The notes under the pieces are model-generated. The model searched no databases. It saw nothing but the letters and a program-made list of their open reading frames with translations, and was not told the DNA's origin. From Podarcis filfolensis (Eukaryota), in the NCBI GenBank assembly GCA_964270895.1, contig OZ185436.1: a DNA stretch of 64,000 nucleotides; one strand, 5' to 3'. Of this stretch, positions 3,639 through 24,986 are shown one piece after another. The translations under genes and the position numbers were made by a program. The number at the start of each line of letters is the position of its first letter. Position 1 is the first letter of the stretch.

Positions 3639-3653
3639 CAACAGCGAGAGACT
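3639..3653 (-). CDS. AFF4: Candidate 15-nt AFF4 microexon in intron 13 (SLSLL)
   Basis: gtttccttctttttgcttccacttccctccag|AGTCTCTCGCTGTTG|gtgagc; phase 0 matches both flanking exons. Confidence 0.55.
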
Positions 3654-4884
3654 CTGGAGGGAAGTGGAAGCAAAAAGAAGGAAACCCAGCAGAACAAACA
3701 ACTGTGTGTGCTTGTAGGCACAGAGAGAGGGAAAAGGAGGGGGGGAATGGGCTGATTGGCTGCTGAGAGAAGCAGCGGGGAGAGAGCTTGTAAGTGAGAA
3801 ATGTAGAGAAAAACAGCTAGAGGCAGAGAAAGGTATGGAGTGTGAAAGCACGCAAATCGAAAGGTTACAAGGAATGAAACAGAGAAAGAGAAACCTTGTG
3901 TGTGCACTTGAACCTGCGAGTCTGCGTGAAGTCACGAGGAAAATGAGAGTTAGAAGGTGTAAAAGGAAGGGAAGGAGCTTCATACAACACAAGTTTAACT
4001 GGTTTGTACTTCCTCCATGAGAGGGGAAAAACCAAGGCAGGGGGTTTACAAAGGATCTCTAGTGTTAATTACACCAATGGCACTGATAAACCAAGGAAAC
4101 AGAGAAGCATGATGACGGAAAAAAGAAAAACCCTCTAGCGTGAGACTACTAAGGGTTCACCTGGAACCGGGTTCACAGGGGACATGGGGAGCAAGAAGCA
4201 TCACACTGCCCTTTTAATATATGAAGGGAGTCTACAGTCTTCTCTCTATTCAACTTTAGTTTTTCTTTCAATCATCATCTGTATGTTAAATCTGTTTACA
4301 AAACAGATAAACCAAATTCTGCTTCAATAATGAAACTCAGCCAACTAGGCTAATGCATTAATAGAACACATCAATGCTACCCTAGCAGGAGAATTATTAA
4401 AACCCAGCAGAACTATGAGGGGATACTAATTACCCTAATTTTAAATTGGTCCAGACATGACTCAGTGTAGGCTTAAAAGAAGGGTGCCAAAAAATCTATT
4501 AAAAACCAACTCCTGCCACATACACAAGCTCTTTGGAATTTCCCCCGTGAAAGCACTGTTTAGTCCAACTCTACTTGGCTCAAAAAATCAAGACTTTTGC
4601 AGCTACATTCCTTGGTGAAATATTTAGCCACTTGTTTACTTTCTGAGGTCCTCCCATTGTCCTAGTTTCTACAAGGCTCTAGTTTTGCTTGAGGCATAAG
4701 CAAATTTACTTTCACTTACTAGTTTATCTACCACTATGTTCCTATTAATGAAACACTGACCACTGATGAACAGAAAACCTCTAATTCAGAGAAACATTTG
4801 CAGTCTAGGAACTACCGGCATGCAACATATCAACTTTGTTGTCTACTTAAAGGTGTGCTCATGTCCACAAAGGTTCCTCTAACA

Positions 4885-5275
4885 CAGGGTGGTACAACTT
4901 TTCATATCAAGTTTACTTCAGCATACAATCCACAGGCTGCACACTGCCTTGTTACGTGCGGTGGGGGGAAACAAGGCCAAAATCTGAACCCCCTGCCCAA
5001 CCAGCCTTTGTGCAGCCTTCCCAAATCCCAGTAAAAGGGCGCTGCACTTTGGGATGGAGCTGTGAGGCTCTGGCAGGGTCCTAGAGTCCTCCTACCTCAT
5101 TCCCAAAGCTGAGAAAGCACTAACTAGGATTTGGAAAGGAGATGAGAAGACTCTAAAAACCCTGTCAGAGCCCTCACACCTTCTCCTTTGCAGGGGACAT
5201 CAAATGTTGCCGGGGGAACACCAAAAGGCATTGCGGGTCATATACACCCCCTGGGCCACACATTGGACCACCCTG
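4885..5275. mobile_element. Non-autonomous hAT element (MITE), 391 bp
   Basis: TIRs cagggtggt.caa / ttggaccaccctg; perfect 8-bp TSD ctctaaca. Confidence 0.88.
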
Positions 5276-5774
5276 CTCTAACAGGTATCTTATAAACTCC
5301 AAGCTGTCGTGTCTCAATTAGAGAACTCAAAAGCTGTGAAATTCTAGCCTTAGCCAGACAAAACAGTCAAATACTCCTACAATGTCTGAGTGGAAAACAA
5401 GCCCCTCCCTCTGACGTCTAAAAGCATATAGCATGAATGTCTGCAAAGAGGAACCCTTTGTGCTTACAGCTGTACTAACAAAGGCATCCATGCAACCTGG
5501 AATTCTACTGGTTCCAGATTACATGGATGCCTTTGCTGGTACAAGAGTACACAGGAAGGTTACCTCCTTGCAAACGTTTGTGATGTAGGCATGGACAAGA
5601 GGGCAGGCCAAGCTAGCATGCGTATGTCAGGTCAGTCAATGCAGCCCTGCTCCCATTTTTTGTTCAACATGTAAGGGTTTCTTCTGAAGAGGGCTTATTT
5701 GCTTGGTTTTACAAAAAGTGCAAACGAAAGGTTATGGACAATGGAAAACTATGATGGAAGTATAATCTTTTTAC

Positions 5775-6009
5775 CTTTGCTTCCTTGGTATTACTTGAGG
5801 CCTTCCCTTCAGTCTTCTTTTGTTTAGAAGAGCTACCTTTGCTGCTGCTACTCTCCTTGTTATTGTTACTGCTCGATTTCAAGGAAGATGACTGACTGAC
5901 GGTTCTCTTCCGAGAACCATGCTCCTGCTTGGAATCTTTCTGGGTGGCTGGGGTTGTGGCTGGAGACGGAAGAAGATCCTTCTCCTTAACAGCACTCTGC
6001 TTTGATGAT
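5775..6009 (-). CDS. AFF4: AFF4 exon 13 ([16 protein letters not shown]...NTKEAK), 235 nt
   Basis: acceptor ggggcag|A, donor AAG|gtaaaa; lies in ORF 5709..6044. Confidence 0.95.
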
Positions 6010-6794
6010 CTGCCCCACAGGGAAGGGAAAAAAATATTAACCAATGCAAGTTACTGCAACCATGAACCTATGGAAACCTATTCCATGCTTCAAGTTCCAC
6101 TAGCAAAAATATCCCATGTAAGAATGAAGAAAATATGGCAGCTCTAAAAGTAGAACATTAAACAGAAAAACCAACCAATCGGCGCTTGTGACACCCCTGT
6201 CCCCAGATGTTGTTTGATGCAAATGGTTAGAGATGGGGGTTGTAGTGCAGCAACATTTGGAGGGCTACAGGTGCCCCCTGCCCCCGCTTTACAGCAACAG
6301 TGGTCAACCAGTGGCCCACGGCCATTTTGGGACAGGTGCCCAAAGCATTCTCAGAATTCAAATATGCCCACTGTTTGAAAAAGGATGGTGACCCCTGATC
6401 TAAAAAGGTAGAGATAACGAGCTATGATCCAGAAAGGTGCCCACTTACAAAAAAATTGGAGCTCTTATAAGCTGTCTCTTCAGAATGGACAAATTGCAAT
6501 TTAAACTACCAAATGTTATATGTGTGGTGGGGCATTTGACATGGCAGCTTTTTTATAAGAAATACTTGCTAAAAGCAGGTATACATTTCCCCCCTAACTT
6601 TACCTTTGAACAAGTGCTGTGTCAACCCAAAATTGAGACTTTTAAAGAAAGCAATCTGACAATTCTGCAGGGGTAACTGATCAAACAAAAACTGGAACTT
6701 TGTGTGCAAATGGACCGCTTTTAAAACTGTGTGCTCTGAGCAAACCTTCTGCTTCATGCATTTCGGATCTTACATAGTGTAAACAGGCACTCAC

Positions 6795-23237: not shown

Positions 23238-23324
23238 CTTTGTTGGGAATGGAAACTTTGAAGGTTCAGTTTTGCAAGGTGTGTGAATAGCTGTCAATGG
23301 CGGTGGCCAAATATGGGTCATCTC
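23238..23324 (-). CDS. AFF4: AFF4 exon 5 ([29 protein letters not shown]), 87 nt, ELL-binding region
   Basis: acceptor gaacag|GAG, donor AAG|gtcagt. Confidence 0.96.
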
Positions 23325-24574
23325 CTGTTCGGAACACAAACCAAAGATTCCAGAAACCATTATACCTTTAACTTAATGCAAACCAAAAAGCACAGCTTAC
23401 AAGTGTTTTAAATTAAAATAATGGGAAAAGATGCCAATTCATGTAACAAGATTTAGTCTTCTCCTGCCCCCTGCAGTCTCCTGTCCCCTACTGATTGACC
23501 GGAAGGTTCCCCAAATGCTCCAAAGTAGATTTTACAGGGCTGCAGGGGAAAAGAGAAAGGGGGGGTTGTCCTTGCACAAGCCAAAGTATTTGCTTTACTA
23601 CAACGCTATCAATGACCAATCCCAACAAAACTTTGTGATCAGAGAATTAAAAAATAATTGTTAGCCTTGTGAACAGGGATAAATTGAACCAACTATGGGT
23701 GGAATCCAATGAATGTTGTTCTACTGACAAAAGGCATCCATCAGGAAAAAAGAGATGGAGACATTTTTAGCAATCGTTCCTTGCATTCTCCCTTGGTCCC
23801 ATCTAATCATGACAGTCGTCACTCGTCATCACCCCGCCCCCCAAAAATGGGGGGCTTCAAAGGAGAGAATGAATTGTCTCCCTCACTGTCCTGCTGGTAT
23901 ATGTCATTCTTCAGAATAGTAACACCCATGGGGATTCTACTTTATTTGTATTAAGAGTCTTAAATGAAACTGCTATATTTACCAAATAACCTAAAAGCTT
24001 TAGGTTTACCAGAAAGAAATGGAAGGAAAAAGTGGAGAGGAAGTTACAACATAATCTTCTTTCAAGACTGACTGTGATTAGTCTTTCAGAATTACATCAA
24101 TGTCATTTTCATGCAGGATACACAAAAATTATTTGATTGACTTAAGGAAACCTTCCAAGGAAAACAAAACATCTATTTATTTAATCCATCAGTTTTATTG
24201 CTAATTTAATATATTGATATGCTTTTCCACTATGCATATTCAATCATTGGGGGGGGGGGGGGTAAATAACCTTTTTATTTAATTTCTGAAGAGAAAATAC
24301 AGTAACATACTGATTTGCATATACAGGAAAATATTCTTTTAAAATATTTTAAGACTTTACCAAAGGAAGACTTTAGAAAAATAATCCGAAAGTATTATTA
24401 AAAATAGAGAACAAACTGGTGGATACCAATGGTGTACAGAAGAGGAAAAAAAGATAATCAGTTTTTAATGAAATGTTAAGCAATATATGGGGGCAATTGA
24501 TTTTGGATTTTTTCAAAAAATTCAACACATTTAAGCAAGAAAATCTCAAAAGCCAGAATAAGAGAACAACTTAC

Positions 24575-24619
24575 TTTTAGAATTTCATCCACACTGCTCA
24601 TGTCACTGGATGCTGATGC
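24575..24619 (-). CDS. AFF4: AFF4 exon 4 (ASASSDMSSVDEILK), 45 nt
   Basis: acceptor tttgtag|GCA, donor AAA|gtaagt. Confidence 0.95.
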
Positions 24620-24941
24620 CTACAAATGAATGATCAGAACTTAACTGGCATATTTGTAATTCAATGTTATAAAACTTCTAGAAAATTCAATTATTATAAA
24701 ATTACTTAAAATGGGATTCAAATTCAGTATTAAGGTACAAAGAGCAGCTTTCATACTGCAGATGAAAAGAGACTCTACAAACATATTTTCATAACTTGTT
24801 CACACCTTTGTATTTCTCATCAAAGTTTCCTAAAATGTATGCAGCTGAGGGAAACTATTGTTAACTTTTTAAATTTCTGAGAAAAATGGTAATCTAAGCA
24901 ATATAATTTTAACGTTCCTGTTTCATGAATGCTTCACTTAC

Positions 24942-24986
24942 GCACTCATTGTTAAAACCGTGTTTATGGAAGACAATCTTACTCGG
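24942..24986 (-). CDS. AFF4: Candidate 45-nt AFF4 cassette exon in intron 3 (PSKIVFHKHGFNNEC)
   Basis: ttctaccttctttttcttctttggcgatcactcgtag|CCGAGT...GAGTGC|gtaagt; phase 0, 15 codons, no stop. Confidence 0.55.

Follow-up and report, generated by a model that had tools for sequence, protein, structure and literature searches.

AFF4 scaffolds the super elongation complex, so genuine switching between isoforms in its disordered linker would be worth knowing about. Vertebrate microexons are 3-27 nt long, conserved and frame-preserving, and they are often neural and SRRM4-dependent. The nearest described counterparts of the AFF4 exon considered here come from birds and fish: the motif CE[SP]NQTD is present in 23 of the 117 listed bird and other AFF4 entries, all five listed chicken entries carry the peptide (isoforms X2, X3 and X4), and nearly all listed fish AFF4 proteins have C[DE]xxQxx at the same position. 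Its presence differs between isoforms X4 and X5 of Pogoniulus and between X2 and X3 of Pelecanus, annotation that suggests alternative use of the exon; these bird isoforms are RefSeq-type models built by computation, and the assembled mRNA contigs back only the chicken-type one. In two Logan mRNA contigs from a galliform bird (L005 and L006), the E7-microexon-E8 junctions lie within an uninterrupted ORF of 1166 codons. The mammalian reference-type AFF4 proteins in our comparison are without the peptide, and a search of main texts found no paper linking AFF4 with microexons.

We analyzed a window of 64,000 nt from Podarcis filfolensis, the minus strand of which carries the AFF4 gene. The translation of exon 3 matches PF05110 (AF-4 N-terminal region, E=1.6e-64), exon 11 matches PF18875, the AF9/ENL interaction motif, and the best database matches are AF4/FMR2 family member 4. 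Exon 5 is identical at 28 of 29 positions to residues 27-55 of PDB 5JW9 chain A, showing that the ELL-binding segment (ELLBow) is present. Of the C-terminal homology domain (PF18876), an apparent start, KLVFDDR, and putative later pieces can be seen in the ORFs at 2631-2846, 952-1242 and 444-680, and the window stops within this domain. Searches were run per exon or with database proteins as queries, and the exon boundaries and phases flanking the candidates were reconstructed from the sequence. The word search with exon 11 covered proteins of at most 600 aa, and its matches are fragments. P0013 and P0082, possibly human or primate transcript fragments, were left out, and the comparison runs without human sequence.

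A sequence-only reading of this gene had proposed that three intronic segments of 45, 21 and 15 nt (c45, c21 and c15; Table 1) make up a hidden exon program. All three were found. Each has an AG preceded by a pyrimidine tract, a GTRAG donor and a frame free of stops, and the flanking phases claimed for them (0-0, 2-2 and 0-0) match the rebuilt exon boundaries. Their proposed placement is roughly right. c21 is 8 residues short of SSSEDSD, and some 27 residues separate c15 from the Pfam C-terminal homology domain that follows it; c45, assigned to the ELL-binding segment, does fall within the crystallized 301-351 fragment, but N-terminal to the ordered 314-349. The c45 junction is located between ...PSQPLD and ASAS..., and c21 reads TC/G TGT GAA TCA AAC CAG ACA AA/C, that is, S-CESNQT-N. 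Among the repeats checked within the window, none contains c45, c21 or c15.

Table 1. Candidate segments and canonical AFF4 exons in the Podarcis filfolensis window
Feature	Position	Strand	Description
c45, intron 3, phase 0	24942-24986	-	looks like a pseudo-exon; ...CACTCGTAG before, GTAAGT after; peptide PSKIVFHKHGFNNEC
c21, intron 7, phase 2	16137-16157	-	microexon; TTTCCCCCCCAG before, GTAAGA after
c15, intron 13, phase 0	3639-3653	-	looks like a pseudo-exon; CTTCCCTCCAG before, GTGAGC after; peptide SLSLL
Exon 3	26003-26791	-	ends ...KIPSQPLD, phase 0
Exon 4, canonical, 45 nt, ASASSDMSSVDEILK	24575-24619	-	
Exon 7	17733-17781	-	ends ...RYNSSSKTSNVHQSK-S, phase 2
Exon 8 (VLINDLKISSSEDSDVEQ)	15200-15254	-	phase 2 at start
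Exon 13	5775-6009	-	ends ...NTKEAK, phase 0
Exon 14 (EKLLNNSSNCP...KLVFDD-R)	2632-2729	-	runs into C-terminal homology domain

Under the same criteria, the 25.1 kb of AFF4 introns contain five frame-preserving pseudo-exons, four of which have an open frame in the phase of their host intron. Dinucleotide shuffles yielded 3.8±2.0 frame-preserving pseudo-exons, 2.3 of them open, and about 10% of the shuffles average at least 4 open pseudo-exons over the three phases. The number of such segments is thus not above chance as a set, and the case shows how easily long introns yield chance pairs of splice sites that keep the frame.

Conservation was scored by local alignment of a 101-nt query against the orthologous intron of a bird-like Logan contig (L001), Calypte anna (L007) and Pteropus alecto (L008). 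c21 scored 32/30/28 against these three, in the same range as genuine small exons of the gene (32/30/34 for E6 and 29/32/35 for E9). The tile means of intron 7 are 13-14, the best other non-overlapping tiles reach 17-18, and c21 is the sole conserved island in this intron when compared with the two birds and the bat. About 30 nt of intron flanking c21 are also strongly conserved. The segment is identical to the bird-like contig at 18 of 21 bases; four exon positions are variable, two of them synonymous third positions. Moreover, the birds keep its AG, pyrimidine tract, GTAAGA donor and reading frame. The element in Pteropus is identical to that of the hummingbird at 20 of 21 bases, but its acceptor is GG instead of AG, and canonical splice sites are retained in the lizard, the two birds and Amia. 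The same intron of Amia calva contains an exon of 21 nt (AGCTGATGGTGACCAAGGAAA) in phase 2-2 (L009:5817-5837), and the five-species alignment that includes it has 7 invariant exon columns out of 21. With its 21 nt, c21 stays within the 27-nt bound, preserves the frame of its phase 2-2 host intron and contains no stop.

c21 is a genuine AFF4 microexon: from bowfin to birds its sequence is conserved together with its splice sites, its phase and its position, and bird mRNA contigs contain it. The exon is already known to annotators in birds and fish: almost every listed fish protein has it, as do RefSeq bird isoforms, those of chicken included, and it therefore is not hidden, as the sequence-only reading had supposed.

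Across birds and one bat, the other two loci do not share the conservation of c21. c45 scored 10 and 15, no better than the intron background, and c15 scored 11/15/13, equal to background; a control pseudo-exon at 29665-29685, outside the reader's list, is also within intron background. Among 234 full-length AFF-type proteins, neither the 15-residue insert before exon 4 that c45 would encode nor an insert matching c15 is present. By comparison with birds and one bat, c45 and c15 look like ordinary intronic pseudo-exons. We consider it very improbable that either of the two is a recent exon confined to squamates, with low-level or single-tissue use. Such an exon would draw on splice signals equal in quality to those of genuine AFF4 exons, and a UGC precedes the AG of c15 by about 19 nt, as is often seen at SRRM4-dependent microexons; however, by a rough estimate a UGC occurs by chance within 30 nt at roughly a third of sites, 15-nt exons without conserved enhancers are rarely recognized, and the unconserved introns, the retrieved proteins and a count that fits chance all speak against the idea.

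The same evidence bears on the claim that the three segments form a coordinated program rewiring the scaffold. Since c45 and c15 are unsupported and c21 alone is real, that program finds no support, and it would be extraordinary if all three were regulated cassette exons that jointly switch AFF4 partners, although each of them offers usable splice signals and a preserved frame and c21 proved real. In addition to the lack of conservation, the absence from all retrieved proteins and the chance-level number, the c45 peptide is hydrophobic/aromatic and thus unlike its S/K/E/P-rich surroundings, and c45 lies outside the ordered ELL2 contact at 314-349, so that the ELL contact region would not be split. 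An annotated cassette does exist in the ELL-binding segment, namely canonical exon 4, which is skipped in chicken X3, Pelecanus X3 and one Amia model and encodes the equivalents of V316/I319/L320 of ELLBow helix alpha1.

Taken together, we regard as the probable account of this gene that c21 is a genuine old cassette microexon and that c45 and c15 are ordinary intronic pseudo-exons, i.e. chance AG...GTRAG pairs that keep the frame. The check leaves one real exon of the three proposed, one already modelled by annotators in birds and fish. For c21, the analysis shows conservation, orthology, annotation in other species and splicing in bird mRNA; we infer that the lizard splices it in as well and that its use may be regulated. 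It is quite unlikely that the lizard conserves nothing but the c21 sequence, whether as a relic or as an intronic element for splicing or regulation, and no longer splices it in. The Pteropus element, almost unchanged despite its GG acceptor, indicates that such a sequence can be maintained where a canonical 3' splice site is missing; the lizard segment, however, retains both splice sites (the AG with a C-rich pyrimidine tract and the GTAAGA donor) and stays open in phase 2, and birds, at a comparable evolutionary distance, splice c21 in. Podarcis AFF4 very probably has an additional 21-nt exon relative to the mammal-type protein, which corrects the picture of the gene obtained with a mammal-type guide protein.

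If c21 is a spliced microexon, as we favor, it would have arisen before ray-finned fishes and tetrapods diverged. Its inclusion would change ...HQSKS/VLINDLK... into ...HQSKS-CESNQTN-VLINDLK... and thereby lengthen by seven polar residues the disordered linker that runs from the ELL-binding segment to the acidic SSSEDSD patch. More speculatively, the 21-nt exon may be regulated across amniotes, with inclusion beside SSSEDSD altering AFF4 phosphorylation, partner choice or condensation, and in mammals it may be unannotated, or retired with its sequence still constrained. We hold this extension to be unlikely as a whole; its retired-but-constrained option is hinted at by the near-identical Pteropus element with its GG acceptor. 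c21 also draws attention to the role of CESNQTN before the acidic Ser patch and to the use of the element in mammals.

Among the described systems, lizard c21 is orthologous to the bird CESNQTD exon (e.g. Gallus gallus isoform X2, P0275), which occupies the same intron and has the same length of 21 nt, the same phase 2-2 and the same AG/GTAAGA splice sites. The two differ in the final residue, which is D in CESNQT-D of birds and N in CESNQT-N of the lizard; moreover, bird annotations include the exon in some models and skip it in others, whereas lizard c21 is known from genomic sequence. The fish ortholog of c21 reads CD(D/G)DQ(P/A)(T/N); the wider fish segment C[DE][DEG][DE]Q[PA][TN] (CDGDQAN in gar, P0257) occupies the same position as c21, directly before M/VL(E/K)DDLKLSSSEDSD. 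The Amia counterpart forms an exon of its own, 21 nt long, within the orthologous phase-2 intron; its sequence has diverged. The fish exon is probably constitutive, since it is found in nearly every listed fish protein. c21 resembles vertebrate microexons in its length, its frame, the conservation of both exon and flanks, and its disordered site beside an interaction or phospho motif. Unlike typical SRRM4-dependent microexons, lizard c21 has no UGC close upstream of its AG. The exon 4 cassette (ASASxDxSxVDEILK) shares with what had been proposed for c45 a length of 45 nt, phase 0-0 and a place inside the ELL-binding segment, but it is a canonical exon, and its annotated alternative is skipping rather than inclusion of a new exon.

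AFF4 lies on the minus strand of the window, and one of three small segments in its introns, the 21-nt c21, is a real, ancient exon. The sequence-only reading had proposed that all three form a hidden micro/cassette-exon program that rewires the AFF4 scaffold. The segments themselves were confirmed and this interpretation is partly supported, in that c21 holds up and the 45-nt c45 and 15-nt c15 are best explained as chance pseudo-exons.

The AFF4 coding exons (E2-E14) were rebuilt from stop-free stretches recognisable as AFF4 and their surrounding sequence, and searches were run with single exons or with database proteins. 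Sequence similarities are consistent with a squamate. Pfam matches to AF-4 in E3 and AF4_int in E11 confirmed the family, and the AFF4 chain of PDB 5JW9 is identical to E5 at 28/29 residues. The 3' end of E11 reads ...KRKHK-LC-Q/GTCAGT in the lizard, ...KRKHKQ/GT in birds and ...KRKHK/GT in mammals and fish, an apparent 6-nt (Leu-Cys) insertion directly before the lizard donor. Some 13 kb upstream of the exon with the ATG, a GC-rich block probably represents the CpG-island promoter of AFF4 together with non-coding exon 1. Farther upstream lies an apparent neighbouring gene; one of its exons encodes a zf-CCHC_3 zinc knuckle (E=1.7e-18) with a Ser/Asp/Glu-rich stretch nearby, and it resembles ZCCHC10, the neighbour of AFF4 in other vertebrates.

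Features in the window, ordered by descending coordinate
Feature	Position	Strand	Details
Upstream neighbour	57152-57424	-	
Upstream neighbour	51496-51810	-	
GC-rich block	42000-44400		54% GC
E2	30501-30375	-	ATG at 30497
Control pseudo-exon	29685-29665	-	intron 2
E3	26791-26003	-	
c45	24986-24942	-	intron 3, phase 0; preceded by ...CACTCGTAG, followed by GTAAGT; peptide PSKIVFHKHGFNNEC
E4	24619-24575	-	45 nt, phase 0-0
E5	23324-23238	-	
E6	19839-19803	-	
E7	17781-17733	-	
c21	16157-16137	-	intron 7, phase 2; preceded by TTTCCCCCCCAG, followed by GTAAGA; peptide S-CESNQT-N
E8	15254-15200	-	
E9	14619-14582	-	
E10	14306-14144	-	
E11	12892-11969	-	
E11 3' end	11969-11977	-	
E12	6883-6795	-	
E13	6009-5775	-	
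c15	3653-3639	-	intron 13, phase 0; preceded by CTTCCCTCCAG, followed by GTGAGC; peptide SLSLL
E14	2729-2632	-	

All three segments were located with the splice signals and phases originally claimed, and their splice contexts are equal to or better than those of genuine AFF4 exons. We scanned the sense strand of the AFF4 introns (25.1 kb) by the same criteria: an AG with at least 67% pyrimidines at -20 to -3, a length of 6-51 nt that is a multiple of three, and a GT[AG]AG donor. Real exon 6 aside, five frame-preserving segments were returned, namely c45, c21, c15, an unlisted open segment in intron 2 and a stop-containing one (17981-17937). Dinucleotide shuffling of the same introns yielded 3.8±2.0 segments of this kind, of which about 2.3 were open in a given phase; the open count (mean over three phases) was at least 4 in about 10% of shuffles, and the antisense strand and the remainder of the window showed similar pseudo-exon densities. 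Therefore, three such segments are the chance yield for an AFF4-sized gene, and each must be weighed individually on further evidence. The intron 2 segment, also 21 nt, phase-compatible and with the same signals, served as an internal control.

Conservation was assessed by simple local alignment of a 101-nt query with a Logan genomic contig of a bird-like species (L001), Calypte anna (L007) and Pteropus alecto (L008). c45 scored 10 in the hummingbird and 15 in the bat (L001 does not cover it), and c15 scored 11, 15 and 13, respectively. The control, which scored 13 in L007 and 22 in L008 (2 of 68 bat tiles as high), is not clearly conserved, and all three fall within the tile background (means 12.5-16, maxima 18-24). 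Moreover, among 234 full-length AFF-type proteins (fish, birds and two mammals), none has a 15-residue insert between IPSQP and WPPPL, whose spacing takes only the values for exon 4 present or skipped, and none carries five extra residues matching c15 where E13 joins E14. With its hydrophobic and aromatic residues, the c45 peptide differs from the S/K/E/P-rich sequence surrounding it. Chance pseudo-exons best explain c45 and c15; nothing suggests a young squamate-specific exon at either place in these comparisons, which reach birds and one bat.

c45 had also been placed at the ELL-binding segment. In the ELL2-AFF4 structure, ELLBow comprises residues 301-351, is ordered over 314-349 and has a minimal site at 318-337, and L320D blocked ELL1/2 binding (PMC5290273). 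Insertion of c45 would fall between the counterparts of residues 306 and 307, inside ELLBow but N-terminal to the ELL contact, which it would therefore not split. In this segment, the exon annotated as a cassette is E4, a canonical exon; chicken X3, Pelecanus X3 and an Amia model skip it and read ...PSQPLD/EMTHSWPPP. Because E4 supplies the counterparts of V316, I319 and L320 in the ELL2-contacting helix alpha1, and L320D blocks binding, skipping in these predicted isoforms should weaken ELL binding.

c21 (TC/G TGT GAA TCA AAC CAG ACA AA/C) scored 32, 30 and 28 in L001, L007 and L008, comparable to genuine exons E6 (32, 30 and 34) and E9 (29, 32 and 35). The only other high-scoring intron 7 tiles overlap it; the remainder have a mean of 13-14 and a maximum of 17-18. 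L001, 82% identical to the lizard in E11 nucleotides and otherwise unalignable in its introns, holds CTCCAG/ATGTGAATCGAACCAGACAGA/GTAAGA in the orthologous intron. In a five-species alignment, lizard, birds and bat differ at four positions of the exon: two synonymous third positions, one Ser/Pro swap and one Asn/Asp swap.

At the protein level, CE[SP]NQTD occupies the c21 site in 23 of the 117 entries of a second protein search, all 23 from birds, with the five listed for chicken (isoforms X2, X3 and X4) among them. Pogoniulus X4 and X5, like Pelecanus X2 and X3, differ in this insert, and thus it is annotated as alternative. Two Logan contigs, each from a separate run, encode the chicken X2 protein intron-free, with junctions ...CAGTCCAAATC/ATGTGAATCGAACCAGACAGA/TATGTTGAAAG..., which is direct evidence of microexon splicing in a bird. 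The lizard copy keeps the AG, pyrimidine tract, GTAAGA donor and frame, from which we infer that it is presumably used in lizard AFF4 too. A literature search found no link between AFF4 and microexons in the main text of papers.

In Pteropus alecto (L008:23721-23767, intron 7), the sole mammal locus obtained, the element matches that of the hummingbird at 20/21 bases and keeps GTAAGA, but its acceptor reads CTCTGG, with GG in place of AG; the insert is absent from both mammalian proteins listed. Mammals may have retired the exon while its sequence is still constrained, the GG may be an exception of this bat or its 2012 assembly, or mammals may still use the exon. Additionally, three AFF1-like paralogues (P0108, P0146 and P0121) read ...SSQPRTS/ML(Q/E)DDLQLSDSE... 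at the matching spot, a resemblance that may place the origin of the microexon before the duplications of the AFF family.

c21 is not hidden, as had been supposed, since existing fish and bird gene models include it. Among about 120 fish AFF4 entries listed, nearly all carry C[DE]xxQxx between ...HQSK. and MLEDDLKLSSSEDSD, and gar AFF4 reads HQPKT-CDGDQAN-MLEDDL at this site. The bowfin Amia calva (L009) has, in the same phase-2 intron, a 21-nt exon, TTTTCAG/AGCTGATGGTGACCAAGGAAA/GTAAGT, encoding ADGDQG-N.
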